Shown here one piece after another: positions 22,601 to 46,959 of a stretch of DNA of 64,000 nt (position 1 is the stretch's first letter; every line of letters starts with the position of its first letter). The translations under genes and the position numbers were made by a program. Location: contig NIVC01000690.1 in the NCBI GenBank assembly GCA_002269645.1, forward strand, positions 413,196 through 477,195, written 5' to 3'. The notes under the pieces were generated by a model. It searched no databases. It was not told the DNA's origin and saw only the letters and a list, made by a program, of their open reading frames with translations. This stretch comes from Macrostomum lignano (taxonomy: Eukaryota).

Positions 22601-25600
22601 ACATCTACCACGTGCAGCTCGGCCGATTCCTGCAGGATCACGACTTTCACGCCGAAATCCGCGACCTCATGCTAAACATGGTCAGCTGCGCCATCAATTT
22701 GTACTACAGGCTTCGAGCAGCGCTAAAGCCGACACCAGCCAAGCTGCACTATACCTACAATTTGAGAGATCTGACCAAAGTTGTTGAAGGATTTTACATG
22801 GCTAGCGAGAAGGTGATTTATAGTTATTCTAATCTCTTTGGTCTACTACTCATTCCTCAGCTAATCCTTTATTTTTCAATTCAACCGTTCCTTTCTAAAT
22901 GCAGGTTGTGACAAGTCGCGAAGCCTGCATCGACTTGTTCGTGCACGAGTCAACCCGCGTTCTCCACGATCGCTTGTGCACCCCGGAGGACAGGGAAACC
23001 TTCTTTGCCCATCTGGCAGACGAACTGCGCCAACAGTTGAAGCTTCGTCTGACCGGAGACGCGTTGCGCGATCAGACGCTCATGTTCGCTCGCTTCCTGG
23101 ATCCCTCAGCCGCCGAATCATCTGGTGCTCGCGGTGGCGGTGGCGGTGCAGCCGACGAAGCAGCCAAGAATGCGCCCTACGCACCCGTGCGGGATCTCCG
23201 CCGACTCCGGCAAGCGTTGGAGGATCTGCACATGAAGCAACGAGTTCAAGAGGTCGATGGGGCGGGCGACGAAGCGTCGGGCGGAGGCGGCGACCAGCAG
23301 TTTGTGTTCTTCAAGGAGGCCATGGAGCATATTGTCCGAGCGGTCCGCGTGCTCGGTCAGCCTCGGGGCCACCTTCTGCTGATCGGCATTGACGGTACTG
23401 GCAAAACATCAACAGTTCGCATGGCCGCGAGCATCGCCCGTGCAAGGGTCGCCCGACTTAGACTGACCCGCAACTACCAGCTGCAGGACTTCCGTGCCGA
23501 CCTCAAATCGGCTTTCATCAGGTCGGCGGTTCAAAACTCCGGCACCGTGTTTCTTCTGACTGACGCCGATATTGTCAATGAATCGTTCTTGGAAGATGTG
23601 AACTCGATTCTCAACTCGGGTGACGTTCCTGATCTATTTGACGCCGAGGAGCTCGAAGGCGTGCTCATCAACTTGAAAGGCGACGCCAGTTCAGCTGGCG
23701 TTCAGGATAATCGCGAGGAACTGTACGCCTTCTTTCTGGATCGGGTGCGTCGGAACCTGCACGTGGTTCTGACACTGAGTCCGCTAGGCGATCGGTTCAG
23801 ACAGCGGTGTCGAGCGAATCCATCCTTGATCAACTGCACCACCATTGACTGGTTCGATCCTTGGAGTCCGGAAGCCATGCTCTCCGTGGCCGAAGTCTAC
23901 TTTGAGCAAGAAGACTTTGCTGGTGCAGATCCAGTAAGTTTACTCATTGTTTATTAAAGTTTGAATATTTTCTTTACTAGTCATTCCATATTTTTCGCGG
24001 TTTCTACAGGCCTTAAAACCGGAGATCTGCAAAGCGTGCGTCACTTTCCATCAGGATATGGAAGGCATTGGAAAGAGATTCTTCGAAGAGACTAAGCGAC
24101 CGTACTATGTCACGCCTAGCAGCTACATGGAGTTTATTAAAACATTTAGCAAAATGATCCTGGAGAGCAGGACAAAGTTTGAGGGCAACAGGTGAGTTTT
24201 TATTTTCTGAATTTTGAGTAGTTATTAAAGATTTTTTAACACTTTTTCACTGTCCTAAAATATTCAGGGATCGTCTTACTCGCGGCCTTCGGCAACTCGA
24301 CGAATCTGACCGTCTAGTGGTGACAATGCAGGAGGACCTTGTCCAGTTGGGTCCGCAAATCGAAGCCAAAGCTCAAGAAACTGAGCGAATGCTTGCTGAT
24401 CTTCAACTTGACCAGCAAGCTGTAGAGGAGGTTCGCCTCACTGTAGTTCAAGAGGAATCCGTTATGCAGCAGGAGGCTGAGATTGTCGAGCGTTACGCTT
24501 TTGAATGCCAGCAGGATTTGGACTCTGTAATACCGGCACTCCAGGAGGCTGTCCGAGCACTGGACGCCCTGTCAAAGCAGGACATCTCTGAGGTCCGGGT
24601 GTACACTAACCCTCCAGATCTAGTGCTCCAGGTAATGGGGTCAGTTTGCGTTCTTCTCGGCGTTAAACCCGATGCCAAGAACCCCTGGAAGACGAGCAAG
24701 CAGCTGTTGACTGATCCGCACTTCCTGTCTCGCATGGTATCGCTTGACAAAGATGCCATTTCGCCAAAAGTATTTCGCCAGTTGAAAAAGTTTACTCGAC
24801 AGGCTAACTTTAAGCCTGATCAGGCTGGACAGGTGTCGCGAGCCTGTCAGTCAATTTGTACCTGGGTATTGGCCCTGGAGCACTATCACGACGTGCAGAA
24901 CATGATAGTGCCAAAGCAGCGCAAAGTAGAAGAGGCAAAAAAGGCACTGGCCATTGCTAAAAGCAATCTAGAGGTGAAGCAGAAGCGTCTCGGTCTCATA
25001 GTCCAACAGCTTGCAGCATTGCAACGCGACTGCGAGGCCAGCGTCTCGGAACGCGAGAGTCTCAAGCAGAGACTGGTGCAGACGGGGGCTCGGCTGAAGC
25101 GAGCCGGACTGCTCACGGCGGCTTTGGGCGGTGAGCGGCAGCGCTGGGAGGAGGCCATAGACAGTTTGCGGCTCCGCTTGAGGACACTGTCGGGTGACAC
25201 GCTTCTATCGGCTGGGGCCGTTGCCTATTTTGGCGCTTTGACCGCTCCGTATCGACAAGCCGCCACGCAGCGTTGGTGCGATTTGTGCAGAGAAAAAAGC
25301 ATCCCGCTCAGTGACGGCTTCTCATTTGTCGGTTGCCAGACCACGCCGCACGATCTGCTTGACTGGCAGAATCGGGGCCTAGCTAGGGACGCAAACTCGG
25401 CTGAGAATGCCGTGATACTGCACGAGAGTCGTCGCTGGTGTCTTATGATCGATCCGCAGCAGCAGGGTCTTCGGTACTTGCAGGTAAAGTATAACTGATT
25501 CTTTCTTTCTATCTAAATCCTACTCAATTCTTGACTGACTACTGAATACTTTGCAGGGTCTCGAGCCGAGCTTGAAACTCGCCCGAGCAACCGACCCAGC

Positions 25601-28600
25601 TTTCCTACAGACTGTGGAGCGAGCCATTCGAGTTGGCGAGCCGGTCGTCTTGCTTGACGTGGGAGAATCTCTTGACCCAACTCTTGGCCCCGTGCTGCGG
25701 AAAGAGATCTTCCACAGGGGCGGGCACAAGCTGATTCGTGTTGGCGAGAACGACATTGATTATGGCGACGGCTTCCGACTCTACCTGTGTACTGCCACGC
25801 ATAACCCCCACTTTCTGCCTGCCGCCAGCATCTTAGTAAACATCGTGAACTTCTCTGTGACTTTTGAGGGTCTTCAAGAGCAACTGCTGTCCTGTGTGGT
25901 GGCTCAGGAGCGGCCCGAACTCGAGCAAGAAAGAGCAGCGCTTTTGCAGTCTCTGGCTCGGTGAGTTATAAAATCGATACTGTTTAAATTGTTCTTCATT
26001 GTAGTTTCCTTTAATAAATATCTAATAAATCGAAAAACTTAAATTTACAGCGACGGTTCTCTCCTCCGTGAACTAGAAGACCGCACCCTAGGCCTGCTCC
26101 AAGGCTCTACCGGTCACATCTTGGATGACGAGGATCTACCTCGCACCCTCGAGCAGAGTCGCTCAATGTCCTCCGAGATCTCGGAGCGTGTCGCCAAAGC
26201 TGCCGCCACCGAACGCGAACTCAGCGCGGCGCGCCAAGTCTACCTGCCAGTGGCCACGCGCGGCGCTGTCATCTATTTCGTGATCGCCGACCTGCCCTCC
26301 ATCAACTTGATGTACCAGTTCAGTCTGTCAACTTTCGAGTCCAGCTTCAGACGCGTCATCGCTGCAGTGCCTTCCAAGAATAGCGAGGATCAGCCGCTAT
26401 CGCTGGAGCAGCGGATGCGTCAAATGATCCACGACGTTACCATGACAACGCAACGAACCGTCACCCTGGCGCTGTTCTCTGAACACCGACTCTGCTTCGC
26501 TTTTCTTCTCTGCGCCGCTGTTATGCGCGCTGTCGACCGACTTCCGGCGGCCGCTTCCGTCGGCACCTCGGCTGAGCCGCTGCCTCAGCGCGACTGGAAC
26601 TTCTTCCTGCACGGTGCGGAGCTGGCGGGTCTGTCCGCCACGGCAACCTCGGGAACTGCCGCTGCTCCGACCGACGGTCCTATTGAGATTGACTGGCCTT
26701 CCGAATCAGTCAGAACAGCATGCGCCAGCTTGGAGTCAGCACCGTCTAGCGGATTCGAAGGTCTTTGCGCCAGTTTCAGCCAGGCAACGGCGCAATGGCA
26801 AAGCTTTCGCGACGCTGAAGACGCCTTCAAGTTAATGCTGAAGCCGCCAAACTTGACGCCCCAGTTTGATTGGTCAAAGTTATCCGATTTCCGACGCTTG
26901 CTTCTGATTCGATTGCTTCGACCGGCTCAGCTAGAAGCAAGCATGCGTCATCTGGTTGCTAGGCAACTCGGGCCGGAATTCACCGGTACGAATACGGCAG
27001 GACTACGGGAGGCCTTTGAATCGGCTAGCGCCGAGACGCCGCTTCTGTTCCTGATGGCTCCGGGCGCCGATCCCACCGCTGCGCTGATGCGACTGGCCAC
27101 GGATTTGCGCGGGTCGGCACTCCACCTGGACATGGTGTCGTTAGGACGCGGCCAAGGACCCAAGGCGGAGGAGCTAATCGGTAAAGCCCAGATTCTCAAA
27201 GGTCGATGGGTGTTTCTGCAGAACTGCCATCTGGCCGCCTCTTGGATGCCGCGGTTGCAGCAGCTGGTTGATAGGTATGCTTTTTCATATGCTTTTTCAT
27301 AGTTGTTCAAAGAACTTTCTCACAAAATTTAGCATAGCATTTTTGATCCGCTTCAACCGTTTCGATCATCTGTTCCATTTCAAAGCTAAATATATTGTTT
27401 ACAATGCACTTGAACGTAGTAGCATGGTCGTAGCATAATCGCATTGAATGGTCAAAAGGGGTTTTAGACTCATGATTTGAAGGTCAGGGGTTCGATTCCC
27501 GATCCCACTGGAACAATTTGCGTTCTTGAGCAAGACACTTAACCCTCAAACCCTAAAAACGAAGAGGTTTATAAATTAAAGGAGGGGGCAGACACGAGAG
27601 ATAAAGTTCGATAATTTGAATATATCTAGGTCGATAAGAGCACAATTAAGGTACGACGGAGGGACACAATATGAGGGAAAGTTTACCAGCACGATTTTTT
27701 GCGACAGGTTGAAGCAGACAGGCTGAGCGAGAAAAGCTCTGAAACTCTCCTACGAGCATCTGTTGTGTGTAAAGAAAGTATGGACGATGCTAAACTTGAA
27801 GAAAGTCCAGCATCGATTCGTGGGGAGCGTAGCGACCAGAGAGAATTCATTGATAGCTCGTATAATACCACATAGCTCGTTAGTAACGCTACGAAAATTT
27901 TCTTCTTCCAGCTTCCAGCGCGGAACGATGCAGCTAGACTCGCAGTTTCGGCTTCTGCTTAGCTCCAAGCCGGACGCCAGCTTCCCTGTCCCGGTGCTGC
28001 ACGCGGCCTGCAAAGTGGCCATCGAATCGCCACGCGGCGTCAAGAGTCTCTTGCGGAAGGCGTTTGCGCCAGACGGTACCGGCTTAGTGTCGAGTCGCGG
28101 GTTCGACTCTCAAACGCCGGACACACGGCGCTTAGTGTTCGCCCTGTGCCTGTTCAACTCGGTGCTGCTTGAGCGCAGTCGCTTCGGCAGTCTCGGCTTC
28201 AACGTGCCGTACGAATTCAATGACAGCGACCTAGAGGTGTCCCTTGTTCACCTGACTGGCAAGTCGACAGTGGACTGGCCCGCCGTGAGCCACCTGGTTG
28301 GAGACATCGCCTACGGTGGTCGAGTCACCGACGAACGCGATCGTCGCTGCTTAGCAGCCGTTTTAGGCGCCTTCCTGCGTCCGGAGGCCCTTCAACCGGG
28401 TTGGCAGTTTGCCACCGGCCTTACCAGCCTCCCGGATGAAGCCGAATTCAACTGGACTCAAGCCTACATTAACCAGCTACCGGAGGCGGAACCACCCGAC
28501 GTGTTCGGCATGGACTCAAACTCGGAGCGAGCGGCGATGGAAGCGCGCGGCCGTCGATTGCTGGATGTGGTTGCAGCGGCGCAACCGAGAATTGCCACTA

Positions 28601-31541
28601 CCACTGCGGCTGGGTCTGCGACCTCAGTCGACTCCATCGGCGGTGCCGACGCTCTAGCTATGGAGGTTATTGAGCACTTGACTCAGGTGAGTATTGAGAA
28701 AATTCCCATGAAATATTAATATTGAAAACATAGTTGTTCGATAATTATTTTTCACACTTAGAGCGTGTTAGCGCTTCCACTCGAGGACACAAACACACGG
28801 ATGTGTGACACGCACAAGCATAAAAAATAACCTTTAAGAAAAATCAAGATATTTGTCTTTTTCTTCGCAACTCGTTTGGCGCTTCGTTCAAAAAGACAGA
28901 AGGTGCTGCGAGCACAAGACGTCAGTACATTAGTAGTGGGATTAAATAAGAGAAGAAGTTTTGCAAAGACAGTTAAAAGGCGGCGAGTGAGAGAAGCGAC
29001 TGCAGGCAGACTTAAAGACCAAATTCCGGGGGTGAGAATGGTACTGAAGTCGGTTAGTTCCCCATACCTGCTCACATTTTTAGCTGCTACCGAAGTCGGT
29101 AGAACGCGAATCTCTTGAGCCGGAGGATCTCCGCAAACGACTTGGCCCTCGCCAGTCCCTGGCCAAAGCCATGGCGCTCGAGGCCCAACGAAGCGGCAGC
29201 GGCACCGTCGCCAGCGGGAAGCTGGGCTCGGCGCTTCATCAGCTTCTGCGCCAGGAGATAGATCGCTACGACAACTTGTTGCGTCAGGTCCGACGCGACC
29301 TCAAGCAACTACGTTTAGCTCTGCACGGCGACACCCTGATGACGGACTCGCTAGAGTCGGCCCTGTCCGCCTTCCTGCGCAACCGGGTGCCGCCCGCCTG
29401 GCTGCGCTACGAGTCCTGCAAATCCCTCAGCGCCTGGGCTGCCGATCTGCGCACTCGGGTTCGATTCCTCGCCGGCTGGGCGGAACGACTCGTGCGCGAC
29501 TTCCAGCAACGCAGCGGCCTGCTCAAGGAGCCGGATATGTTTCCGCACGGACCGGAACCGTTCGCGCATTGGCTGCCGGCCTTCTTTTTTCCGCAAGGAT
29601 TTCTCACCGCCGTGCTTCAGGCTCAGGCCAGGAGGCTTCGCGTGCCAGTGAGCCAGTTTATTCTGAGTGACCGCATGCCATCACCGATTGACTCCATGCT
29701 ACCACCCCTCTACTCCATGCTACCACCCCTCTACTCCATGCTAAAGCACCCTCTCCTCCATGCTAAAACACCCTCTCCTCCATGCTAAAGCACCCTCTCC
29801 TCCATGCTAAAAGACCCTCTCCTAAAGCATTAAAGTTGACCTGCAAGGCGACGTCACCGGTTCTAGAGGCTATAAACAGTACGGTCCTAATATGGCTTTA
29901 AATAACGGAGAAGTGCAGTTTTTACACGTATTTTGTGTTACAATAGGTACCTGGTTAGCAGTATTAACTAATCGTTTTATCTGTTAAATGTTAAACAAAA
30001 AGGTCGACCTACTGGAGTTCCGTCATCGAGTCCTGCCAAGCAGTCCCCCGATTGGCAGCGGCAGCGTCGAGGAGTTCGCCTTCCAGTCTGGCTCTCCTCC
30101 ACCAACCGACGGAGTGTTCGTGTTCGGCTTGGTGCTGGACAGCGCTGCTTGGACCGAGAGCGCCGGCGGTCTCACAGAGAGTCCGCCGGGTTCGAGATTC
30201 TGCGAACTGCCCGCTATGCACATGCTGCCGTGTCAGGTTAGTCCGAATCTCGCGCTAAATTCGTTGGGTTTTATTCCATGCATGGCCTTGATTAGGCTGG
30301 CTAAGGCACAACGAATGTAGGTACATACTAGAAAATGAGAAATGCAGGGTCGCTGTACAACCTGCGTACGTATCATTATCCTATCGTTTATCCTATCGGC
30401 AAAGCTGTTTTCCTCCTCTTCAATGTGGCTCTTGACTAATGATTAATTGATTAGTATATTGCTAAATGATTATTACTCAGTTTGTTCGGAGCCTCAGACA
30501 CTGCTACACATCAAGAGCAGTAGGAATGGGCATAGCTGTTTTCCTCCTCTTCAATGTAGCTCTTAGTAATGTAACTCTTCGATGTAGCTATAGATGACCC
30601 GAATTTGTGTCATACCATCATTAAATAACCTTGATTTGTGTCATAATATCATCGTTAGATAACATTGATTTGTGTAATATCATAATCACTAGATAACCTT
30701 GATTCGTGTCATATTATCATCATTAGATAACCTTGATTTGTGTCATAATATCATCGTTAGATAACATTGATTTGTGTAATATCATAATCACTAGATAACC
30801 TTGATTAGTGTCATATTATCATCATTAGATAACCTTGATTAGTGTCATATTATCATCATTAGATAACCTTGATTTGTGTCATAATATCATCGTTAGATAA
30901 CATTGATTTGTGTAATATCACAATCATTAGATAACCTTGATTTGTGTCATATCATCGTCGTTTGATAACCTTGAGTTGTGTCATATCATCGTCGTTCGAT
31001 AACCTTGAGTTGTGTCATATTGTCAACACTAGATAACCTTGATTTGTGTCATATTGTCAACACTAGATAACCTTGATTTGTGTCATATTGTCAACACTAG
31101 ATAACCTTGATTTGTGTCATATTGTCAACACTAGATAACCTTGATTTGTGTCAAATTGTCAACACTTAAAATTACACTTAATTTTCGTCATGTTGTCAAC
31201 GTTCGACATGGCTCATTTTTGTCATATTTCCTGCATTATACATCTGTTGAATTGTGTTGTCTTATTTATTTGGATTTAAAGTATCAACACTCGTCTGCCA
31301 TTTACTCTCAATTCAGACCGGCAACCCTGACCCAGCTGACTCTACCGACTCAACAGCGGCTGGTTCGGCCAGCTTCAGCTACGACTGTCCCGTCTACCGC
31401 ACCGCCAGACGTGCCGGGGCGCTGTCCAGCACGGGCCACAGCACCAACTTCGTCTGCTCGGTGCGCCTACCGGCCACGCAGCCGCAGAGCGTGTGGCGAC
31501 TGCGCGGCGCCGCCCTGCTCTGCGCTCCGGACATTGATTGA
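541..31541 (+). CDS. DNAH14: Axonemal dynein heavy chain, DNAH14-like (DNAH6/14 group); 24 exons visible, 5' end outside window
   Basis: Phase-consistent GT-AG chain: 541-1996, 2490-2898, 3354-4111, 4734-4808, 5833-5938, 6497-6747, 6964-7731, 10848-11058, 12270-12530, 13467-13697, 14535-14718, 15459-16038, 16510-17225, 22085-22460, 22560-22812, 22905-23933, 24010-24191, 24268-25483, 25557-25960, 26051-27274, 27912-28686, 29084-29647, 30003-30236, 31317-31541 (TGA). Four P-loops [32 protein letters not shown], plus linker, stalk/MTBD and C-terminal CPVY. Dynein identity is certain; the DNAH14 label rests on recalled similarity to the human protein. Confidence 0.9.
2074..2462. repeat. 15-bp minisatellite (CCCCAGATGCCACAT) x~26, dynein intron 1
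   Basis: Near-perfect tandem copies visible directly. Confidence 0.97.
2490..2898 (+). CDS. Dynein HC exon 2 (linker/DHC_N2: [14 protein letters not shown])
   Basis: Acceptor ccgcag ending at 2489, donor GTGAGT at 2899, conserved RHW motif. Confidence 0.9.
2915..3265. repeat. Degenerate GGATGAT/GATGG-rich simple repeat, dynein intron 2
   Basis: Recurrent ggatgatggg motifs. Confidence 0.75.
3354..4111 (+). CDS. Dynein HC exon 3 (DHC_N2: [24 protein letters not shown])
   Basis: Canonical linker motifs; AG ending at 3353, GTGAGT at 4112. Confidence 0.95.
4217..4512 (+). mobile_element. tRNA-derived SINE with a CORE/V-type central domain
   Basis: A-box-like TAGCCTAGTGG, B-box GGTTCGATTC (4268-4277), then CCTTGAGCAAGACACTTAAC...CTGTAAAATGGG resembling the MIR/CORE-V conserved block; AT-rich tail. 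Confidence 0.75.
4734..4808 (+). CDS. Dynein HC exon 4, 75 nt ([24 protein letters not shown]); missed by the ORF track
   Basis: Matches the dynein RG-VE-WL-VE motif; phase 2/2 fits both flanking exons. Confidence 0.85.
4955..5625. repeat. 16-bp minisatellite (CCTAAGGTGTGAGATT), dynein intron 4
   Basis: About 40 copies with ggtgt/gttgg variants. Confidence 0.95.
5833..5938 (+). CDS. Dynein HC exon 5 ([13 protein letters not shown])
   Basis: cccag acceptor, GTGAGT donor at 5939. Confidence 0.85.
6083..6470. repeat. 21-23-bp minisatellite (CTAGAGACCCTGACACCATTTAT), dynein intron 5
   Basis: Direct tandem copies. Confidence 0.95.
6497..6747 (+). CDS. Dynein HC exon 6 (VHNRDI...DFNWRK)
   Basis: ttccag acceptor, GTGAGT donor at 6748. 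Confidence 0.9.
6801..6912. repeat. 16-bp minisatellite (GCGCCCCTTGGTGCTG) x~6 ending in a poly-C run, dynein intron 6
   Basis: Direct tandem copies. Confidence 0.9.
6964..7731 (+). CDS. Dynein HC exon 7, AAA1 ([38 protein letters not shown])
   Basis: Hallmark AAA1 motifs. Confidence 0.97.
8249..8499. mobile_element. MITE / foldback element with ~85-bp TIRs and TA flanks (Tc1/mariner-type)
   Basis: Left arm TACACCTTTTCGCGTTCAATTTTGATCAAAGTCC...TTCAGACTGGGG; the right arm is its reverse complement with few mismatches and ends ...GAAAAGGTGTA. Confidence 0.85.
10848..11058 (+). CDS. Dynein HC exon 8 ([17 protein letters not shown])
   Basis: tttcag acceptor, GTAAGG donor at 11059. Confidence 0.9.
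11490..12180. repeat. 30-bp minisatellite (GGGGGAATTGCTGAGATGTCAAGGCTTACT) x~22, dynein intron 8
   Basis: Direct tandem copies. Confidence 0.97.
12270..12530 (+). CDS. Dynein HC exon 9, AAA2 P-loop ([15 protein letters not shown])
   Basis: Motif plus AG/GTAAGC boundaries. Confidence 0.92.
12598..12890. repeat. 22-bp minisatellite (CTGACTTCTAATTGGGGATCTG) x~13, dynein intron 9
   Basis: Direct tandem copies. Confidence 0.95.
13467..13697 (+). CDS. Dynein HC exon 10 ([13 protein letters not shown]...EWTDGL plus Q21)
   Basis: AAA2 NPK/W-DG motifs; ccgcag acceptor, GTAAGA donor at 13698. Confidence 0.92.
13617..13679 (+). repeat. Coding CAG/CAA tract (Q21) within dynein AAA2
   Basis: In frame within exon 10. 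Confidence 0.95.
13756..14040. mobile_element. MITE/HINE-like element with ~29-bp imperfect inverted ends and an internal GC hairpin
   Basis: TAATACCCATGCTTTAAGGGCGTTAATG (13771) pairs with CATTAACGCCCGCAAAGCATGGGTATTA (14001-14028); hairpin GGGCGCC-GTTA-GGCGCCC at ~13973-13990. Confidence 0.6.
14041..14210. mobile_element. Small MITE-like element
   Basis: Ends GACATTTGTGTCC / GGGCACAAATGTC; perfect ~16-bp internal stem AAATTAGCGGGCAGTT...AACTGCCCGCTAATTT. Confidence 0.5.
14535..14718 (+). CDS. Dynein HC exon 11, acidic/Ser-rich insertion within AAA2; missed by the ORF track
   Basis: cgccag acceptor, open frame [12 protein letters not shown]...[13 protein letters not shown] donor; supplies the phase 0 to phase 1 bridge between exons 10 and 12. 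Confidence 0.75.
15459..16038 (+). CDS. Dynein HC exon 12 ([34 protein letters not shown])
   Basis: AAA2 Walker B and sensor motifs. Confidence 0.95.
16510..17225 (+). CDS. Dynein HC exon 13 (AAA3 P-loop GESGVGKT)
   Basis: Motifs [25 protein letters not shown]; GTAAG donor at 17226. Confidence 0.93.
17252..17499 (+). mobile_element. Non-autonomous Helitron-like element (Lep1/DINE-style architecture)
   Basis: 5' TC after A, ATATACTAAAAA, (GT)n microsatellite, AAAACGGCTCAACCGATTTT block, 3' weak hairpin plus CTAG; the 3' flank is not T. Confidence 0.5.
17936..20335. repeat. 24-bp minisatellite (GCACTTGATAAACCAAGGATTATT) x~100, dynein intron 13
   Basis: Tandem copies giving 8-aa periodic pseudo-ORFs. 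Confidence 0.98.
20475..20900. repeat. Degenerate GGATGCTTGCTATCTG repeat, including three to four ~41-bp copies
   Basis: atgcttctataatatctggggggtgcttgctaatctgcaga repeated at ~20648-20810. Confidence 0.8.
22085..22460 (+). CDS. Dynein HC exon 14 (AAA3: [21 protein letters not shown])
   Basis: Walker B and arginine-finger motifs. Confidence 0.95.
22560..22812 (+). CDS. Dynein HC exon 15 ([15 protein letters not shown])
   Basis: AAA3 lid motif. Confidence 0.92.
22905..23933 (+). CDS. Dynein HC exon 16 (AAA4: [32 protein letters not shown])
   Basis: AAA4 motifs. Confidence 0.96.
24010..24191 (+). CDS. Dynein HC exon 17 ([11 protein letters not shown]); missed by the ORF track
   Basis: AAA4 lid motif; ctacag acceptor, GTGAGT donor. 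Confidence 0.9.
24268..25483 (+). CDS. Dynein HC exon 18 (stalk coiled coils, MTBD, start of AAA5: [11 protein letters not shown])
   Basis: Stalk/MTBD motifs NPPDLV, ERQRW, ENAVI. Confidence 0.95.
25557..25960 (+). CDS. Dynein HC exon 19 (AAA5: [22 protein letters not shown])
   Basis: AAA5 motifs. Confidence 0.94.
26051..27274 (+). CDS. Dynein HC exon 20 (strut/AAA6: [28 protein letters not shown])
   Basis: AAA6 motifs. Confidence 0.95.
27420..27560 (+). mobile_element. Second, truncated copy of the tRNA-derived SINE family seen at 4217
   Basis: Shares GGTTCGATTC-CGATCC-ACT-GGAACAATTTG-GT-CTTGAGCAAGACACTTAAC with the 4217 copy; 5' part diverged, sequence unrelated after CACTTAAC. Confidence 0.75.
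27912..28686 (+). CDS. Dynein HC exon 21 ([30 protein letters not shown])
   Basis: AAA6 lid motifs. Confidence 0.94.
29084..29647 (+). CDS. Dynein HC exon 22 ([27 protein letters not shown])
   Basis: C-terminal domain motifs. Confidence 0.93.
29685..29825. repeat. 21-23-bp minisatellite (CTCCATGCTACCACCCCTCTA / CTCCATGCTAAAGCACCCTCTC), dynein intron 22
   Basis: About 6 tandem copies. Confidence 0.85.
30003..30236 (+). CDS. Dynein HC exon 23 ([15 protein letters not shown])
   Basis: C-terminal barrel motif; the acceptor is purine-rich and weak. Confidence 0.88.
30595..31165. repeat. ~34-bp minisatellite (AGATAACCTTGATTTGTGTCATATTGTCAACACT), dynein intron 23
   Basis: About 17 copies in three variant blocks. 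Confidence 0.92.
31317..31541 (+). CDS. Dynein HC last exon ([25 protein letters not shown]...GAALLC)
   Basis: Canonical dynein C-terminus, TGA at 31539-31541. Confidence 0.95.
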   Translation, partial: TGNPDPADSTDSTAAGSASFSYDCPVYRTARRAGALSSTGHSTNFVCSVRLPATQPQSVWRLRGAALLCAPDID

Positions 31542-32092
31542 TGTTATTGAAAATATGCTTTAATCATTCATTTGATTTGAAACGTGCATGTTGTTGTGTT
31601 TGTTGAAACTAGACAATTTTTAACGAAATTATTATAATTAACGCTAAATATGCTGTTTGAATTTTAAATTGGCGCCGAAAATAGCTAAGCCTTACAATTT
31701 GTGTTTTACTGTAGTAATTGATAAATTAAAAAAGTAGCAATTTTCGGCACGATTTCAAATATCGATACTTTCAGTCCCGTTTATCGTTAATCTGTTTACA
31801 AGCATGTAGAGATTGTTAAGAATTTGAAAACCTGATAGGAGAAAAACAAGAATCTCGTAATTTATTTGTTAAAAAGATTATTTTATGATACATTGGTGAA
31901 TTTTATTGATAAACTTTACTAAATAAATAAAGCAGGACTGTGATAACACTGTAAAACAACAAATCTATCGTTTCTACTGCTGACAGCTTTTACATTGAAT
32001 ACAAAATTAAACCAAAAACGCTTTGTAAAAAATCTTTTACAAAACAATTAGTGAGATTAAATACTTCAGTACGAGCCAACCATTCAAGAGTT

Positions 32093-34481
32093 TCAAGTCA
32101 GAGCCAGAACCAATTCCAGAAAGATCTTGTCCGCCGTTTGACGAAACTGCATCAAATCGGGCAACAGTCGTTGGCCAATTATATTGGAAATGTCAAGGAA
32201 GAATCGCTGATTTAAAAGAATTGACCAAGCCACGGAGAGACTGCAATAGATAGAAAAACTTTGTTTTGTTAGTCGAATTTGTACTATTAAAATGCAAAAC
32301 TTGACGAATCGCAACTTACAGGGGCAAGATTGCAAAAATGCTCAGCATAAGCATTTGATTCGATTGGTGTCTTGATGGCGTGTTGTAAAACTGGCAGATC
32401 ACAAACTTTGTGTGCAGAAATAATTGAAGACACGCGAACGCAGCCACAATGAAGACTACAATTTCTGCTGCACCTACCAGGACAGGTCCATCACTGATGA
32501 GGATGGGAACTCTGGATAGAGCGGCCAATGCAGCGGCTAACATCGTCACCATGAACAGGCCATTGAAGCACGCTTTTCTTGCGACACTCCAATGCTTCTG
32601 CGCATCGCCGAGACCGCGATTCTCACAATCTAATAGCTCCCGGATTTTCTTAGAACATTTTCGAATTTGCTCGGTATTTCTGCTGTAGTGAGCTAGCGCG
32701 TACAACTCGTCGATGTCTGGGTCAGGCTCGAGCGCTCTGCGCCACTCGTTCAGAAATATCTGCTCTTTCGACAGCAGCTCCGCCTGAAGACTCATCAGCA
32801 GGGAGCGAAAATTCACTTGCAGCATGTTGCCACTGCCGTAGGGCGTGATTTTTATTAGCTTCCGGGTGAACTCTGGTAGAAAGCTGAAGTCTGGTTCCAC
32901 TCCGCAGGGAAAGTTGAATCTACAGGGCTCCACATGTCTCCACATGACCTGTTGCAGTTTTTCTTTGGCGCTCTCTGAGTCATCCAGGCGGAGACGAGCC
33001 ATAATTACCAAGCAAGCGCTTACTGAAGATGAGCTCGGGAGCGATCGTAGCTTTTCAATGTGCTGAAGAAATTCCTTCCGAGCATCTACCTGCAGCTTCG
33101 GGATCTCGTTGAACAAATGTTGCACAAGCAGATAAAGAAGGGCGTCACCAGTGAACGCTTCGAAATCATTTAGCTCCACCATCGGTAGCGCAGTGAACAA
33201 CTGGAATACCCTGTCCGATTCGCGCGCACTGACGCGATTCTTCACGAGATTCAGCAGCGGTGTGACATCTTTCTGGAGTGTACGCAGCCTTTCAATAATG
33301 CGATTTTTTCCTTTTTAAAATCGATACGACCGGCTTTAGACGTAGATTTTAGACGTAGTGTCGCATCCGGCATGAAAAAGTTCGGCATGCAATCGCCAGG
33401 AGTCTTGGTGGCAGTAAGGTAGTTTACTAGCATGCCAAGGGACTCCTTCAGCAATGAGATTAGCTTTTCTTTAGTCCAAGCGCTCTGTTGACTGTTGCTA
33501 TGCCCACTTATCATGAAGAAGAGCAAAGCTTTTGCGTGGCAAGCCCTAAGGCTGCGGATACTCCCTGGTGCCTCTGGAAGTAGACGCTTGAAGACGAGCA
33601 GAAGCAGCACGTACAACTGGCCTTGAATAGTGCTCAGTCTGCGCATGATCTGCTTCTCTTGCAGCTTGAAGCTCACTTTCAGTTGATCCAATTCACCCGA
33701 TTCAGTATCCAGCTCTAGAACAGTGCAAGCAGAAGTACAGGAGAGGCCTTTTGGAAGCAGCAATCGTACTCTGTCAGCCCTGTTGGGTCTGCAGCACTTG
33801 TAGACTTGGCGTATCTCCTGACTTGGCCGCGAACCATTGTTTGGAAACTTCAGCGTCACAGGATCAACTAAAAATTTATTTAATAGAATATTTCAATACT
33901 TCTCTTTACCACTCTTTAACTTAGATATCAGTGTTTGTCCCTAAATAAGAATTGTTGGCTTTGCTGCATAAATTTTACCAATAGATCCAGATGTTTTAAC
34001 TCGTCCGTCTAGCACTGGTAGCCTCTGTCCTGCCTTGCCCTTGCACTGACAATCACCATCGAGATGAGCTTGATCCTCGATCTTGAAGCTCAGCCATTTG
34101 ATGCTGTCTTTGCCGAGTCCATTTCCCTGAGGGTCAGTCAGGAGGCTCAAACTCCAGCCTTCAGCAAGCGAACCGATTAAGAGCCGTTCATCCGGATTGA
34201 GCTGTCTTGCTGCATCTTCCAGGCCGTCTGCAGCTCGGCACTGTTTACTGGCGCCTCGATCATTGATGCCAGCTTGGTTCAAATGCTCGTAAAGCTCAAT
34301 TGATGCTAGTTCGTCTGGGTCTCGTTTGGAATTGCTGAAGCACATATTTACATTTTTTATCACAGGGATTACAGAACTCAAAACTACGATCTACTCAAGA
34401 ATGAAAGCGCTAAGCAGAACTTACTCTTCGCCACAATCTTCTACAGTGCTGCTTTCTTTTGTTGAGCTGTTTGCATCACTA
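32093..34481 (-). CDS. Mab-21/cGAS-like nucleotidyltransferase-fold protein with three C-terminal hydrophobic helices; one apparent frameshift (gene or pseudogene)
   Basis: Exons 34481-34425, 34334-33979, 33867-32320, 32240-32093 (phase-consistent GT-AG). Motifs IGSLAEGW, LKVSFKLQEKQIMRRLS, GQLYVLL, HAKALLFF, W..EKLISLLKESL, CMPNFFMP fit the Mab-21 fold. The frame changes at the T6 run 33304-33309. 5' start not resolved. Confidence 0.72.
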
Positions 34482-35628
34482 CTGTAAGTAAAATCATGCT
34501 TTGTATTTAAATCCATTAAAAAGAGTTAATTTTTTACAAATAAACTTACTTTACTTGACGACGCTTTCGACCTCTGGGCCTTAAAAGCAGGAAGAGAAAG
34601 TGTCTGAATAAAGCATTTCAAAGCTTAAAGTGTAAGTCAAAGGTAAATTCAATGCGCTCATTTAGCCAGGCACTGTAGAGTTTTGATGCTTTGTTATACT
34701 TTGCAACAGAAATGCACAGTTTCGCAATAAGCGCACAAGGACCAGTGAAATAACTTGTGCAGAGGTCCTTGTAACAACAATAGATGTAGGTTGAATATCA
34801 ATATAGTACAACGAAATCAAATCAAGTCAATCAAGACAATTATTTCTTACATTTTATCCTCCAATTTTAGCACCAGAATCCTTTAGGATGGAAATCTGAT
34901 TGAAAGCGAACCAAAAACGGAAAATCTTGCAACTTTTCCGAGCATATTTATAAGGCTGAATGTACTGTTAAAGTATATTTAGACATTACGCACGAAAGTT
35001 CAGTTTGATGAGTTTCAAGTCTAATTTTATTCTTGAATTCACATACTTAGCTACCTAAAACAAGGAGCTAATAAAACTTCCATAATTATATGCGTTCTTT
35101 AGATAGCTAGTACTTTATCAGCAATATAGTTGGTCCAAAAACCGTGGAAATTCCGCGGTTTTTTCATTTGTATTAATTGCGCAAAGATGCTTAATAACAC
35201 TATCTGTGACCTTCATCGTGATTAAAATAATCTTTTTTATGCATACTAGAGAAAATGTGTCCTGTCAAAAATAACTATACATTTCATTTGAGCGCAGTTC
35301 CAGGTCAACCAGTAAGTCAAGAATTCAGTTTTGAGAAATGTTTTAGAGTGATCCTGATTTATTTTTTCTTATACTGAAAGGTATGAGTGTAATTACTGAT
35401 TGAGTTTAAGTCAAATTTGCAAATATGATATGTATCGCAATATAATACTAATAAAATAAGTAAATATGAGACGAAGGTAAATATTGATCCCACACCAGTT
35501 TAAAAAATTAAAACGAAGTGCTTCTATGTTCTGATAGGGTCTGTGCCTTTAAAGACTAATATTGGCCTTCAACTTCGAATGAAAACCAAGTTGGAGAATA
35601 ATATTACACTCGTGGCTTGCGAGATCAA

Positions 35629-38600
35629 TCAAGCCCGGGAGACGCCCGTCGCTCCTCTCCCTCCGCTCATCAGTTCGGCCACGGACCACCTGTTCGCTGC
35701 CTCGGTGCAGTACTCTGGCGCTTCGCCGTGACGCAGCGTCAGCCTCAGGCACTGCTCCATAGATGGCGGCGTCAGCGGCCTTCCCAGAGCGGACTCGAGG
35801 AAAGCGACCAAAGGTACGAGGTGATTGTCCTGACGGAAGTTGGTGAAGAAGTCCTCCATGAGATGCAGCGTTGCATGAGGCTCAGGCAGCTTGAGATTGT
35901 TGGTTTTCAGGCTCTCGTTGAACATCTGCTGTCCTGTTTTATGCGGTTGAACGGTCGTATTATGAAATGTCGCAACTATTTTTTGCTATTTGGCTTTTAA
36001 ACTTTCCCCAATTTTCTTCATTTTTCAACTACTTCTTTTCAATAACTGCTTCTCAGACTGTCCTTTTCAGACTGTCCTCCTCAGACTGTCCTTCTCAGAC
36101 TGTCCCTCTCAGACTGTCCTTCTCAGACTGTCCCTCTCAGACTGTCCTTCTCAGACTGTCCTCAGACTGTCCTTTTCAGACTGTCCTTCTCAGACTCTCC
36201 TTTCAGACTGTCTTTAGACTCTCAGGCTTTCCTTTTCAACCAAGCTCTTTCTCACCCTCTCCTCCACTTATCCTTATGCACGTGTTGCTTGCACTATATT
36301 ATAAACTTATGGTTCGAACTCTGCAATAACTACTGTCAGCAGAGAAGCGGCTCACTGTTAGGCAGCCGCTTGTAGTGATACAGCACCGGGTGCAAGAAGT
36401 TGCACTCGTAGCCAAAAGCGATATCGCAGCCGGCACGTCTCTCGTGAAACGTGTCAGCTCTGGCGCCTGAGAAATTCTTGCCGTACTCGAACTGGAACAC
36501 GATCACGTCGGTGCCCTCGTCGACTGGATGCCCAGTGATGCGTGGCAGAATGTGAAGCGTCCGGGATGGAACTTCCTCTAGCAGGGTGAAACTCGTTCGG
36601 TCTCTGTTTTAAAAAAGTTGATAAATTTAGTGCAAAAAACTGATGTTTAGTCTACTCATCGGGGCGGTCGCTAGGCCAGGGTATGTCCGATCCACTCTCC
36701 AGAAGCTGCACCTCCTGTCTTTTCCTCTTCCCATCCTTTTCCAAAAGTGTAGGGATCCAACGAGCAATAAAATTAGAACTAAAAAAGATTTCTGTTTAGA
36801 CCCCGCGGATAAAATTCTGCTAAGGGGGGTGGTATCGAAAAAAATGACCTGATTTAATGGTGTCGTATGCAGGATGTACAGCGATACCGCGATCCTATAG
36901 GTGTAAATCGCGCGAAACTCTATTGAAGCCAGAAGGTGCCATGCGGTCTCGCCAACTTTTTTAGGGGGCTCGAGCAGTGCGCTCCTTTTCAATACTACCA
37001 TAGAAGCTATGGTGAGGCTTTCGCTACTGATAGTAATAATTAAAGCATTTAAACTCACTTATCCACCAGAACAATATCGCTGAGAAAGGAAAACATCTGG
37101 TAGGTACCAGAGCCTTCGTTGATTCGTTTCACTAGGGCGTCAATCAAACCCATTAATGGTCTCCGCGTTCCCGGCCATTTGTTTCCATGACGACGATTTT
37201 CCAAGTAGCGATGCAACGCTCGAGCCGTGTAGCGAAATCCGTGAATAAAACCGCCGGCAGCCTCGCGAAAGTCCAAGCCGTGCGTCATCGTGCCGGCGTA
37301 GAAAATCCCGGGCACATCGGACGATTCGAACTGGTGGGAGATGCGCGGGTACTTGTTCCGGTGGGTCGACGTCTGACTCAGGGGCGCTGTGACGTCGGCA
37401 TCCCAGGTGAAGCCGGTGGCTCGAATGATAATGTCGTAGCAATACTGCTGCTCCTTGATCCGGGTCTCCAGGCCGTCACGAGGGTTGCCCTCCGGCGGTT
37501 GAAGACAGAACTCGCCAGTTGAACGTCGGGAGATTCCTATGGATTCTGGATGATTTTGGAGCAAGCTTGCCTATAGATTTTCAACAACCACCCTCGATGA
37601 AGCTTATGGGCGATCAACTAGCTGTAAGAGAACCTGTTGAGTTTTTCATTCAGATGTGTCTTGCTAGGCGCTTGTCGTCAGGTAAGTCAAGGCAATAGTA
37701 ATATTAGGAGTGAATAACGTGAATAATATGCTTTGAAAGTGACATCTTGAAATTAAAAATGAATCTGTAATTGTCAAGAACTCATACTCATAGGTTCTGA
37801 AGAAGAATATGATTTGCCAACTTGCAACAACGAGTACTTTAATAATTACTGCATTATTTCCGCACCGGCTTTAGAATGAGTGCCATTTGCGAATATAAAA
37901 TTATTTGATAAATGATATAACGAGTGTAAGATATGAAAAAGCTATTGAGGCAAAGTTTTTTTAATCAAAAAAGCGATTGATAAAAATTCTACTGCATAAT
38001 TTTGTAGAATACCTGTGACCTAAGCAAATAGCCAAGCCTCAGTAAAAGTGTCTCTTCAACGATGAGGATTTTTTCTCCCGAACCGACTGTTGGCGATGCG
38101 GAACGGCTTAAAAATTCTTATTTATATTCTGGAGAGTCTGAAGCGTTAAGCAAATTCTGGATGGTTAGGTAAATATTGAAATGCCAGGTAGCAATGGAAT
38201 CTTGGAGTTTTCTGCTTCTCCCGCATGACTGCAACTTCAAACCTGTACTTTATAGCATATTCTTAGAAATGTTCAAGGAATGCATCCAAAAACAAATTTA
38301 CGACTCGTATAAGTTAGCTGATTTGCGCAACTCACCGCTCTCAAACATGCCATCCAACGACTTCAGCTGATAAGTGTCCAGCAGCTCGTTGTTGACAGCT
38401 CGGACGTCTCCAACGTAGTGCGTGCTCCAGGCGAACCTGACGGCATGCCTTCCAGCCATGTGCAGGAACCGAGTGTTGCCGTAAATGTGTTGAGCAGTCT
38501 CGAATGCCGAGTTGCCCTTACCAATTATCAGCACCCGTTTGCCTTCAAAGTCGGACGCGTTCACGGACACCTTGTCGTAGCCGATGGTGTGCTCAGCTCC

Positions 38601-39143
38601 CACAAAGTCCGGCTTTCGTAGGTTTGGTAAACCGGTTGCCATGACAACCACTTTGCAAGAGTAGTTCCTGGAACCGGTAGTGTTCAAGCGAAAATTCTCT
38701 CTAGCGAGCTTCTCGACGGAAGCCACGGGGGTGTTGAAGTCGACTTTGAGGCCTAATTTGGTTTTATAATCGTTCAAGTACTTAACGAGCACTTCCTTCT
38801 GTGGAAACATGATGCTGCTGTAGTGCCGCAGCTGGAGACTCGGATCGTCGCTAATAAGGCTGTTCCAGTCGTGCCGCAGAGTGTACTCGGTGTTGGAGGA
38901 ATCCGTCCAGCGCTTGTTGATGCTAATCAGCTTGCCGTGGCGCGGGTACACCGTGAAGAACGAGCCGGCGATGCTTGCCCTCTCGATCACAACGTAGTCC
39001 CTCTTGGCGCGTTGCATGAAGTACGCCAGCTGCAGCCCGGCTGGACCAGCGCCCACGATGCAGTACTCCACCGACTTCACCTCCGTGTCAGCAGCTTCAC
39101 TGCTTCCGGCCAGAAAAACTATCAGAATCAAAATCGGCAGCAT
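35629..39143 (-). CDS. FOXRED2: FAD-dependent oxidoreductase domain-containing protein 2 (FOXRED2/ERFAD-like), 4 exons, ~615 aa
   Basis: Exons 39143-38336, ~37545-37059, 36603-36356, 35933-35629. Signal-peptide-like MLPILILIVFLAGSSEA, GAGPAGLQ, RHDWNSL, GKGNSAFE, THYVGDVRAVNN..LDTYQLKSLDG, AGGFIHGFRYT, EYGKNFSG, NFLHPVLY. The exon-2 acceptor (37545 vs 37536) is uncertain. Confidence 0.9.
36050..36222. repeat. CTCAGACTGTCCTT-type minisatellite (~16-19 bp), FOXRED2 intron 3
   Basis: About 10 tandem copies. Confidence 0.9.
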
Positions 39144-40395
39144 TGTTCACGTTGGGTTTTTCTCCGCAAAAATGCTCTGACTAAAAGGAATGTTCGACTA
39201 CTGCTTTCCTGCTTTTGAATAGAAGACGCTTTATTTGAACTCGTAGAGCTATTGTTCTCAAGAACAATCTGAGACCTATAGAAAAGCAGGAAAACAGACC
39301 CTGTGCAAAGAGGCTGCTGCACATTTTCTCTGGCCTGTTGTTCAACACGCGGCAATATGACTGTGCGTTTCTAGCCTCATCATGCACGCTACTGAGGCTA
39401 GCTCGCTCTCTGAAATATGTGGTCTATTCGAATATCTCTGCGAGAGACGAACATTCGCAGCAGGAAATCATCAAACTGCGGCGAAAGTAAAAAAATGGCA
39501 AGACAGTGGTGGCACGAAACCAAACCTCTGCGCGAACCAAAATTTGCAGACGAATTTATTGTTGCGAATCTGAGCAAACCAAAGACTCACAGGCGGAGAC
39601 AAGACTAAATAAATAACACCCGCGCTTGAGCAGCCCCCAGTACACTGACCCAGGGCCTGCATGCACCCCACTGACCCACCCCAGCCAAGCCAGCCACCTC
39701 AACCCGCAGTTTAAACGAGTTTACCACCAACACAGTGGCAAGGGTTAAACAGAACAATATAAGATGCGAACATGGATACACAGGAATGCATTTGGTTGCT
39801 GTGCTTCTCTGGGTTAGATAGACTATACAGAGTATTTACAGCTTTGCTAGAATATGCCAGATTTAAAAACTAAAGATAGAATATGACGGAGCACTATCCA
39901 TTGACCTCGGGCTTTGCTTTTATGGAGCAGTATAGCCATTCAAATAGCAATATTGAAATTCTAAATGCATGCATTAGATTACTGCAAGGGCTTTCGCCAT
40001 CGGGGAACAGGAAGGAACAGAAGGAAGGAGTTTTTTTCGCTTATGATTATTGAATTGTCTTCTCCTGGTATGCTGTTTTACCTACGTATAATAGCTAGGT
40101 TTCTTCAAATTCTTTTCTTCTGGTAGAAGCAACCTCGACAGTTAAAGATACACTTCGATAGCACGGTCGCACAAAGGGCCAGTCACCATCAAGTATCGTC
40201 ACCTTGAAATAGTTTGGAGTCATCTTCAACTAATACTAGTACTCATATTTTTACACAGAAGCACCTTCAAGTAGTTCAAATTTAATCAAAGCAGTTCGAG
40301 TCACCCATCGAGCCCCTGCTACTTTCTGGGGTAGCTACTAATACCGGTACGAGGCTACGAACGTACTGATCTGGGGATCCCCTTACTCATGAGGT

Positions 40396-44380: not shown

Positions 44381-46959
44381 TATCGGATTCATTTGTCATT
44401 CCGGTGCTTCATCAACCGACGAAGAGGCTAATTTGGCCCTTAAGTTCACCAAAGGGCACCGACAATGATCCTATACAAGTATAGATTCGAAGACAGACTG
44501 ACCTAACGCATTCCAGTTCGTACCAGTAAACATTGTAGTTTTCTCTTATTCCAAATGTTCGTCTTATTAAATGAATTTTATCGCTGCATGCTCCAATATC
44601 TCGCTTAGCCAATAGTTACCAACATAGAACGTTCGTTGATAATGTTTCTATTTACGAGCTACAACTGTTTGTAACTTGATGATTCAATATGAATAATGTT
44701 TATTTACTCGTAATTTTAAACTATGGAAAATTTTCTCACAACCATACACTTCAATGCTATTTCGTCTATAGCCGATGCTTTTTATCTTGCTCTTTAAGTT
44801 AAAGTTCTCGTCGATAGTTTGCAAATTCAAACTAATTTTGTCGGTAATTTCAACTCCTAAAGCATCAGTGCGTGCGTTTATCCGATTTTATTGCATATTT
44901 ATTCCCCTTACCAATGCTCCGTTCATGATAATTGTCTTGGGGAGTACAATCTATGAAAAAATGCCTGTTTGAAGGTTTTCAGAAAGCAAGTATTTGACGA
45001 AGCAGTAGAATTTCTTGGAGTCTTAAAGCTCTACAAGCAATAAAGGTAAACTTTCTCTTATCAGGCTTATCTTTACCTGCGTATTTATCTACAGTTTTAT
45101 AATCAAACTGATTATGCCGCATCACGCATCTTTGCACAGTGGTAAATATGGTTTAATTTTAAACAACTGTTTTGTCCAATCGATACTAAATGAGCTAGCT
45201 TATCACGGTCGATTATACCATGGTATATTACATCGATTATTCGATCTGTAGCTTCTAAGTCTATCCTGTGTTAGTCGTATGGGTGTCTCATTGTCAATCA
45301 GTATGCGCTTAAACTATGCCATAAAGTTTGAGATTTAAAAAGCATTCATCAGTTAAAGGCGCGTACTTTTCTGCGTGCGACCCCCAAATCGATGTGATTG
45401 AGCCTGGAATTAAACCTATATGGACTTTGTAGCAGCTGACTTACTTAAATTTACTTGAAAAATAAATTACGACGCGCTGCGCACTTACTAATAGTAGTAT
45501 CGGTCTGAACTGAACAGATGCAATACTGATGAGCGATGCCTTGATAGATAATTTAACGATAGAGTAAGTCCCCTGGTACAGGGGTGCCGTATAGTTTAGT
45601 GGTCTAATTCGGCGCTCTGATATGCCAGTGCATGGCCCAGGCTCGATTCAAATTTGGTGCTAAATTACGAGTAATTGGAAACTCGGCTTGTATCTGCTCG
45701 TGCAATAAATGCCTAACGATAAATAAATTTAGGGCCGCTGTACACTCTTGTGTGTGTGTGTGTGTTTGCGCACGGGGCATTTGTTGGGCCATACGCGTAC
45801 AACGGGACCCGCACTGTTGGGCCAAAAAAAATGTTGGGACTGTCCCATCAAGTCCGTCCAACACTTCCAAAAAAGTTACAATAGCAGCTCAAAAAAATAC
45901 TCTATGGATTCAGCTCGACAGCCTCTTTTTGATGGTGCAACTCATTTTTAATAATTTTACTTGCTGTGTCAATAAATAAGCAAAAACTGGCGTCCCAATA
46001 AGTAAAAATGATACAAAATTCGACCAAATCACTATTGGGACACTGAAATGGCTAATCTGCTCCCGCATATTTTTATTGGTTTTTTCTCATATTTTTACTA
46101 ATAGTAGATTTCAAGCGCATTCATTTGCTGCAGTCTTTGTTTTAAGACGTAAATACATAGCATACATTAAAATACATACAAAGCAAAGCATAGCAAAACA
46201 CTTTTAAGGGTATTTTATTGTCAAAGGATGGTTCTGGATGGAGATAAACCTAAAGAAATGACAAGGGCTTAAATTTACTTCTGACTGTGATGGGCATCAG
46301 TACTCTACACGAACTAAATTGTTAGGACAGTGTTGCAGTGTTGAATACAACAGCCCACTCTTGTTAGGACTCATGCTATTGACTGCTGCGCGCATTCGAT
46401 ATTCTATAAATTGTTGGAACTGTGTGCTAGAGTGTCGTTTACAAAAGCCCACTCATATTAGGACTTACCCCATACATGTTAGGACTAAGCCCTACCCCCC
46501 TGTGTACATGGCTCCAATTTACCAGAGTCCCCTTGCTAGTTAGGTGTACATTTATTTTGGTCTATTATTGACGCCACCCCGCAAACGTACGGTAAACAAA
46601 ATTGGCATGTACTCGCCATGCTGAAATCAATGGTCAACTCTGCCTCTGCCATGGCACCCGAGTCACCATGGTATGGAAAGAACAGCATGGAATGGCACAG
46701 CGATAAACATGTAAGTGGTATTAAAAAACTTTGTCGGAAACAAGAAGCATTTATATTTAAATGCTATAAAAAATACTGCTCCTGCTAAGCAGTACCTACC
46801 TTTCCTTCAGGTATATCACCTTTGATCAACTGCCATGTGGCGCAATTGCCAAAGGATCCGTCGACTTTAACCGGTAAGCTGTAAAAGCTTTGAGTAAAAC
46901 TTGACATTTCGTCTGAATCCATTGACATTCAATAGCCTACGTGTCCAACCACAAAAATT

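Follow-up and report, generated by a model that had tools for sequence, protein, structure and literature searches.

We identified a disrupted gene in a 64,000-nucleotide stretch of the Macrostomum lignano genome (assembly GCA_002269645.1, contig NIVC01000690.1, positions 413,196 to 477,195; 'the window' hereafter denotes this whole stretch). The gene lies on the minus strand, comprises six exons (34852-32093) and carries a 1-nt coding deletion relative to an intact paralogue. On balance, we read it as a young pseudogene copy of a MiD-like, non-catalytic, membrane-tethered relative of the cGAS-like receptors (cGLRs).

A frameshift relative to an intact paralogue

The best database match to the gene is PAA50173.1 (P0001), an intact M. 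lignano protein of 713 aa that is 93% identical. Its locus (L001, contig NIVC01003702.1) and the window remain collinear for more than 20 kb, with ~95% DNA identity that extends to intergenic sequence. Both copies have the same neighbours: on one side a Pyr_redox_2 gene, on the other a dynein heavy chain gene. The window thus represents a paralogous (or homeologous) M. lignano segment.

We set the exon borders by aligning the window to L001, whose coding sequence, with equivalent borders, translates exactly to PAA50173.1. The five introns all start with GTAAG or GTAAA and have a pyrimidine-rich end with AG. A start codon split between AT and G (the G at 34579) is also present in the annotated paralogue, and an AATAAA lies ~185 nt 3' of the stop codon. 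The gene has the following features:

34851..34852, minus strand: exon 1, last two bases (AT of the start codon); window identical to L001 here, 5' untranslated region continuing upstream
34580..34850, minus strand: intron 1, 271 nt, GTAAGA...TTTTAAG, splitting the start codon after AT (from the L001 alignment)
34550..34579, minus strand: exon 2, (M)PRGRKRRQVN, basic N-terminus (from the L001 alignment)
34425..34481, minus strand: exon 3, SDANSSTKESSTVEDCGE; its acceptor is the 5' limit (34481) of the original prediction for this locus
33979..34334, minus strand: exon 4, N-terminal half of the nucleotidyltransferase (NTase)-like core, with G84-S85 at 34174-34169 and S107-I108-K109 at 34105-34097
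32320..33867, minus strand: exon 5, remaining Mab-21 fold, middle domain, hydrophobic helices 1 and 2 and first half of helix 3
33817-33815, minus strand: E166, the third acid (in exon 5)
33562-33356, minus strand: Mab-21_C-like helices (in exon 5)
33304..33305, minus strand: site of the 1-nt deletion, where a C of the paralogue is gone and the frame shifts after codon 336 (from the alignment to L001)
33251..33253, minus strand: premature TGA resulting from the frameshift, giving a 353-aa product ending ...KKEKIALLKGCVHSRKMSHRC
33188-32589, minus strand: family-specific middle domain (in exon 5)
32511..32564, minus strand: hydrophobic helix 1, NGLFMVTMLAAALAALSR, aa 584-601 (frame-corrected reading)
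32415..32483, minus strand: hydrophobic helix 2, VLVGAAEIVVFIVAAFACLQLFL, aa 611-633 (frame-corrected reading)
32351-32210, minus strand: hydrophobic helix 3, aa 655-675, across intron 5
32241..32319, minus strand: intron 5, 79 nt, GTAAGT...TTGCAG, within hydrophobic helix 3
32093..32240, minus strand: exon 6, second half of helix 3 (LSVAWSILL), 38-aa amphipathic tail and stop codon TGA (32095-32093)

The coding sequences of the two copies show a single indel between them: L001 reads GGAAAAACATCGC where the window, between 33305 and 33304, reads GGAAAAA-ATCGC. The frame of the paralogue across this site (KKEKHRIIERLRTLQKD) aligns with every other family member, and the window state is therefore derived. 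In the window, the upstream frame reads ...DFKKEKIALLKGCVHSRKMSHRC and then terminates, while the long downstream open reading frame (ORF), ...RIIERLRTLQKDVTPLL..., lies in another frame. The window ORF stops inside the C-terminal helical lobe of the Mab-21 fold, ahead of the middle domain and of every hydrophobic segment. The window copy thus carries a disabling lesion (the 1-nt deletion, with a stop codon at 33253-33251) relative to an intact paralogue whose frame is ancestral, as in a pseudogene.

The original prediction, which was made from the sequence of the window, described a spliced gene of ~700 aa at 32093-34481 and assumed that it encodes a full membrane protein. A spliced minus-strand gene is indeed present at these positions, but ~700 aa are obtained only by inserting one base; as assembled, the frameshift cuts the product at 353 aa. 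On the minus strand, 31900-34700 of this eukaryotic region translates into long open runs interrupted by short GT..AG intervals. The first spliced model (34345-33979, 33867-32320 and 32240-32093) is likewise continuous only with one base added near 33305. The proposed 5' boundary at 34481 has to be moved, since the start codon lies two exons further upstream (exon 2 at 34579-34550; exon 1 ending at 34851). The proposed intron at 32319-32241 proved correct: its GTAAGT...TTGCAG borders join ...AILPL to LSVAWSILL exactly as in annotated PAA50173.1.

Two other start sites were considered and dropped. An in-frame ATG within intron 3 (34345, MCFSNSKRD...) conflicts with the paralogue model, which has two upstream exons and a split AT-G codon. 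Flatworm spliced leaders can carry an ATG; a start supplied in this way at the 34580 acceptor was dropped because the frame there runs into a stop.

We found no convincing intron that would rescue the frame. Splicing at any of 52 GT..AG pairs would give a restored, stop-free frame, but the GTAAG/polypyrimidine consensus seen in the five real introns is absent from all of them. The strongest of these pairs (33427..33273, 155 nt) lacks consensus quality and would remove 52 aa of the helix bundle. An 11-nt 'intron', implied by the UniProt model P0002, is not credible.

Three UniProt models from M. lignano (P0002, P0003 and P0018) are fragmentary and share ~99% identity with the window. When homologues were sought a second time by word index, with profile A3, nothing emerged beyond these three models and PAA50173.1, and a literature search on the gene identifier gave no match. 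The three models dodge the frameshift by the 11-nt 'intron' or by large exon skips, and their automatically assigned names ('GB1/RHD3-type G domain', 'Acyl-CoA desaturase') have nothing to do with the gene. These are annotation artefacts in need of correction. The locus merits a frameshift flag, and such artificial micro-introns and exon skips are to be avoided in gene models.

Several observations suggest that the frameshift is probably real and recent. P0002, a model that departs from the window at several residues, contains the same shifted peptide, KKEKIALLKGC. What is missing is a C, which makes the gap something other than a change in homopolymer length. In the neighbouring dynein gene, a 4-kb coding block that is 97% identical to L001 has indels only in two AT-rich clusters. 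One coding indel in the gene and no stray ones in the coding blocks of its neighbours argue that the assembly is not riddled with indels.

Other observations weigh against our reading. The deletion adjoins an A-run (AAAAA[C]A), with the absent base sitting between two A-runs, a context prone to long-read consensus errors. The 378 codons 3' of the lesion are open in the corrected frame, with a ratio of nonsynonymous to synonymous substitution rates (dN/dS) relative to the paralogue of 0.41, compared to 0.50 upstream (values that derive from only 36 substitutions and are averaged over both lineages). An open downstream frame with this dN/dS fits a very recent lesion and an assembly error equally well. 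The overall dN/dS of 0.46 indicates only weak constraint, including on the intact lineage. The predicted local distance difference test score (pLDDT) of the structure model described below is only 45-60 over the C-terminal 140 aa. Finally, the active enzymes reported by Li et al. (2023; PMC9980059) come from insects, anemones, molluscs, hydras and corals only.

The chief alternative is that the window copy works, that the 1-nt gap is a consensus error and that the locus encodes a full 713-aa membrane-anchored pseudo-cGLR. All five introns, the stop codon and the AATAAA are intact, which together with the A-runs and the open downstream frame favours this explanation. The matching shift in P0002, the loss of a C as opposed to a change in homopolymer length, and the clean neighbouring coding blocks count against it. 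We consider an assembly error distinctly the less probable origin of the gap, and a working gene unlikely. The window copy is most likely a recently inactivated duplicate whose transcript is probably a target of nonsense-mediated decay.

Fold and hydrophobic C-terminus of the encoded protein

A Mab-21/cGAS fold at residues ~38-375, as put forward in the original prediction, is supported by paralogues, by a family profile and by a structure model of the 93%-identical intact paralogue. Pfam searches, which had been suggested as a check, gave a mixed outcome. The Mab-21_C model (Pfam accession PF20266) matched the window model at 17.1 bits and PAA50173.1 at 19.7 bits, both under the gathering cutoff of 24.1, and the Mab-21 NTase model (Pfam accession PF03281) matched neither. 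A direct PDB sequence search with the window model also returned no match. Four paralogues (P0027, P0034, P0044 and P0021) exceed the PF20266 threshold at 27-31 bits. Membership in the Mab-21 superfamily thus holds by transitive homology through these paralogues, together with the fold match.

We modelled PAA50173.1 with AlphaFold2, using an alignment with 19 trimmed paralogue cores (pLDDT 75.3; predicted template modelling score 0.73). Foldseek comparison of this model with the PDB identified Sp-cGLR1 (8gjy, E-value 6.7e-5), MiD51 (4nxu, 2.2e-4; the second-best match) and cGAS (4.4e-4), followed by MiD49 and the bacterial enzymes CdnE and CdnG. Alignments covered ~380 columns with template modelling scores of ~0.5 normalised to the target. 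The family profile additionally matches cGAS (9e-7) and Sp-cGLR1 (6.7e-6) in sequence.

Li et al. (2023; PMC9980059) define cGLRs by an active-site motif, homology over both lobes and AlphaFold similarity. By family profile and paralogue E-values, homology extends over the NTase core and the C-terminal helix bundle. Predicted structural similarity to cGLR/CD-NTase enzymes is evident for the intact paralogue.

The fold is followed by a family-specific middle domain and a hydrophobic C-terminus. The three C-terminal hydrophobic segments noted in the original prediction are evident in both copies, with Kyte-Doolittle 19-mer peaks of 2.0, 2.7-2.8 and 2.3 at aa 581-606, 611-629 and 655-673, against a maximum of ~1.3 over the first 560 aa. 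The AlphaFold2 model places long helices in this region with low confidence. One uninterrupted exon (exon 5) encodes the Mab-21_C region together with helices 1 and 2 and the first half of helix 3, which excludes a separate transcript as the source of these segments.

This arrangement is unusual within the family. Among the matches listed, none of the other 150 relatives has a C-terminal hydrophobic cluster after the core. A search with the hydrophobic C-terminus (166 aa) as query recovered nothing but a model of the same gene. The 130-aa tail has no significant domain match (a weak Oleosin match at aa 563-615 is non-significant, E 0.16). Without a homologue or domain match, the membrane module reads as a lineage-specific anchor, and the membrane effector domain suggested in the original prediction is unsupported.

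Basic residues (R and K) precede helix 1, the stretch between helices 1 and 2 is short and neutral, a loop with K, R and R separates helices 2 and 3, and the tail carries mixed charges. This pattern fits an N-in, C-out three-pass topology. Alternatively, the C-terminus could form a monotopic hairpin at the surface of lipid droplets or the endoplasmic reticulum, or a buried helical bundle, which would make the protein peripheral or soluble. Helices 1 and 2 are only ~9 residues apart, a stretch that includes a Pro; helix 2 contains a Glu; and the weak Oleosin match and low pLDDT point the same way. We nevertheless regard this arrangement as improbable, as all three segments score 2.0-2.8 over 19 residues (the usual cut-off being 1.6) and the loop charges, as read from the sequence, appear to obey the positive-inside rule for three passes with the N-terminus inside.

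Catalytic residues

The family to which the gene belongs has the consensus GS[FY][AS][ED]GWGNSL..L[DN]GRT..SD[IV]D[VW], followed ~55 residues on by RPA.D. This consensus fits the cGLR active-site motif h[QT]GS-[X8-20]-[DE]h[DE]h-[X50-90]-h[DE]h (Li et al., 2023; PMC9980059). The window gene and PAA50173.1 depart from it in the same way. Both keep the GS loop (GSLAEGW, G84-S85), which the original prediction had recognised. At the position of the family D-h-D, at the start of a predicted strand (108-121), both have S107-I108-K109 within GKDSIKW. Both retain a third acid, E166 (D in the family), in a predicted strand at 165-173. The sequence thus reads IGS (84-85), 21 residues, S107-I108-K109-W and, further on, Q-E166-I, which departs from the cGLR motif at the acidic pair.

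The loss of this pair, also claimed in the original prediction, is borne out by comparison with the family. The [DE]h[DE]h motif is kept in 71 of the 87 relatives with a scorable GS loop by regular expression, and in four more by eye (~75). Acid-losing relatives include P0013, P0014, P0057 and P0065 (D-h-N), P0017 and P0022 (G-I-D), and P0024 (N-V-N). Catalytically dead members are therefore not unique to this gene within the family. With the D-h-D pair lost, synthesis of a nucleotide second messenger is predicted to be absent, and by its sequence the protein of this gene lineage is very probably non-catalytic.

P0014 (PAA93319.1, 2111 aa) is among the paralogues closest to the window gene. 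It shares the HRLLIGS and RADRVRLLLP sequences and has D-I-N at the dyad. This intermediate state suggests that the acidic pair was lost stepwise in this sub-branch.

It is very improbable that the protein is still an enzyme that signals from the membrane, using non-canonical residues (e.g. D106, E88 or E166) or catalysing another reaction: the GS loop and third acid are kept, an Asp (D106) directly precedes the replaced pair and the core dN/dS is below 1, but Ser and Lys occupy both metal-binding positions in otherwise well-conserved columns, these positions lie at the start of a predicted beta-strand as in cGAS, and the motif is treated as essential by Li et al. (2023).

Relatives, proposed role and surrounding sequence

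Searching 1.84 billion representatives with HMMER and a small family profile, we identified 215 proteins (cluster representatives), 103 of them below 1e-10. The strong matches that were looked up (E below 1e-20) are all from M. lignano (19 of 19). Weaker matches are ordinary invertebrate Mab-21 proteins with both Pfam models. Sequence comparison places the gene as a divergent member of an M. lignano-specific cGLR expansion composed mostly of ankyrin fusions with an intact D-h-D.

This expansion has already been catalogued. Several M. lignano ankyrin-containing proteins are listed as cGLRs in the supplementary tables of Li et al. (2023; PMC9980059), and five M. lignano proteins (numbers 89-93) are among the 140 cGLRs cloned in that study. 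One of these, PAA45980.1, belongs to the P0044 cluster of the family described here. PAA50173.1 was not found in those files of the same study that were searched, as expected from its departure from the motif. The original prediction had described an architecture that its author did not recognise. Unusual as this architecture is, it occurs in a known family, the M. lignano ankyrin-cGLR expansion, which has been catalogued and partly cloned. Flatworms are otherwise reported to have largely lost cGLR signalling.

Other members of the expansion have further domain combinations. P0013 contains a cGLR-like core, ankyrin repeats and a caspase (Peptidase_C14) domain. Two cores lie in tandem in each of P0016 and P0026. 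The sequence after the core end in P0064 looks kinase-like by eye. Some of these M. lignano fusions may be gene-model merges.

The ankyrin-cGLRs of the same species (PAA45980.1 and PAA86972.1; numbers 89-90 in Li et al., 2023, PMC9980059) are true paralogues of the gene. They match it at 1e-48 to 1e-57, with 32-36% identity over the Mab-21 core and middle domain, and share both the GSxxEGW loop and the family-specific middle domain. Ankyrin-cGLRs have N-terminal ankyrin repeats, S-D-I-D and no hydrophobic C-terminus, whereas this gene has no ankyrin repeats, S-I-K and three hydrophobic helices.

Sp-cGLR1 (PDB 8gjy) and cGAS have the same order of GS loop, D-h-D strand and third-acid strand as this gene. 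Both work as soluble enzymes and keep the whole acidic triad. The protein described here has lost two of these three acids, and it has in addition a middle domain of 200 aa and the membrane module.

Catalytic inactivity is common among Mab-21 proteins (PMC2794190), and members with an N-terminal anchor are well known (PMC1784063). ITPRIP/ITPRIPL (DANGER) and TMEM102 are Mab-21-domain proteins with predicted signal or transmembrane segments, mostly without catalytic residues (PMC1784063, PMC2794190). The localisation signals of ITPRIP/ITPRIPL (DANGER) are N-terminal (PMC1784063), and these proteins have no specific sequence relation to this gene.

MiD49 and MiD51 (MIEF2 and MIEF1), which are Drp1 receptors of the mitochondrial outer membrane with an ADP/GDP cofactor, possess a membrane-tethered Mab-21/NTase fold without transferase activity, as predicted for this protein. 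These vertebrate proteins have no significant sequence similarity to this gene and are without its middle domain. They are held by a single N-terminal anchor, in contrast to the three C-terminal segments (aa 584-675) found here, where no N-terminal hydrophobic segment occurs. By analogy, MiD49 and MiD51 would be the nearest functional counterparts, differing from a protein with a C-terminal polytopic anchor and an extra middle domain.

In its intact form (PAA50173.1), the protein would consist, in order, of a short basic N-terminus, a cytosolic cGAS/Mab-21 fold, a helical/beta middle domain, and three hydrophobic helices with an amphipathic tail. With Ser and Lys in place of the Mg-binding aspartates, it would be incapable of two-metal nucleotidyl transfer. 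Its role may instead be that of a non-catalytic scaffold, a ligand binder or a decoy tethered to the membrane, comparable to MiD49 and MiD51, which display a dead NTase fold on an organelle membrane. We infer its topology, membrane anchoring and scaffold function alike.

A bolder possibility, which we offer tentatively and think doubtful, is that the intact form (PAA50173.1, and also the window locus if the deletion were an artefact) is the first cGLR-family protein with a C-terminal polytopic anchor, recruited de novo after catalysis was lost, and that it sits on an organelle as an adaptor, decoy or ligand sink and thereby regulates the large ankyrin-cGLR expansion. Should the intact paralogue be functional, it would be a case, separate from MiD49/51 and anchored at the opposite end, of a cGAS-like receptor fold converted into a pseudo-enzyme on a membrane. 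The paralogue would also offer a handle on the regulation of an unstudied and very large cGLR expansion in a flatworm that is amenable to genetics.

The two neighbouring genes are collinear with L001 at 95-97% identity, which points to a large segmental or whole-genome duplicate and not a local gene copy:

~23548-31000, plus strand: dynein heavy chain (L001:13727-22755)
~36000-39800, minus strand: Pyr_redox_2-type flavoprotein (L001:5342-9228)

Repeats occupy much of the rest of the window. A tandem satellite with a period of ~662 bp and copies 98-99% identical fills the last 17 kb (46958-64000) and runs off the window end; with a period over 500, it escaped Tandem Repeats Finder. Minisatellites with periods of 14-41 bp occur at 2074-2464, 4952-5619, 6082-6456, 11477-12177, 12611-12887, 17935-20340, 20618-20820, 30616-31161 and 36049-36212. 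The array at 17935-20340 consists of ~100 copies of a 24-bp unit. Some of these minisatellites sit between genes that are collinear with L001.

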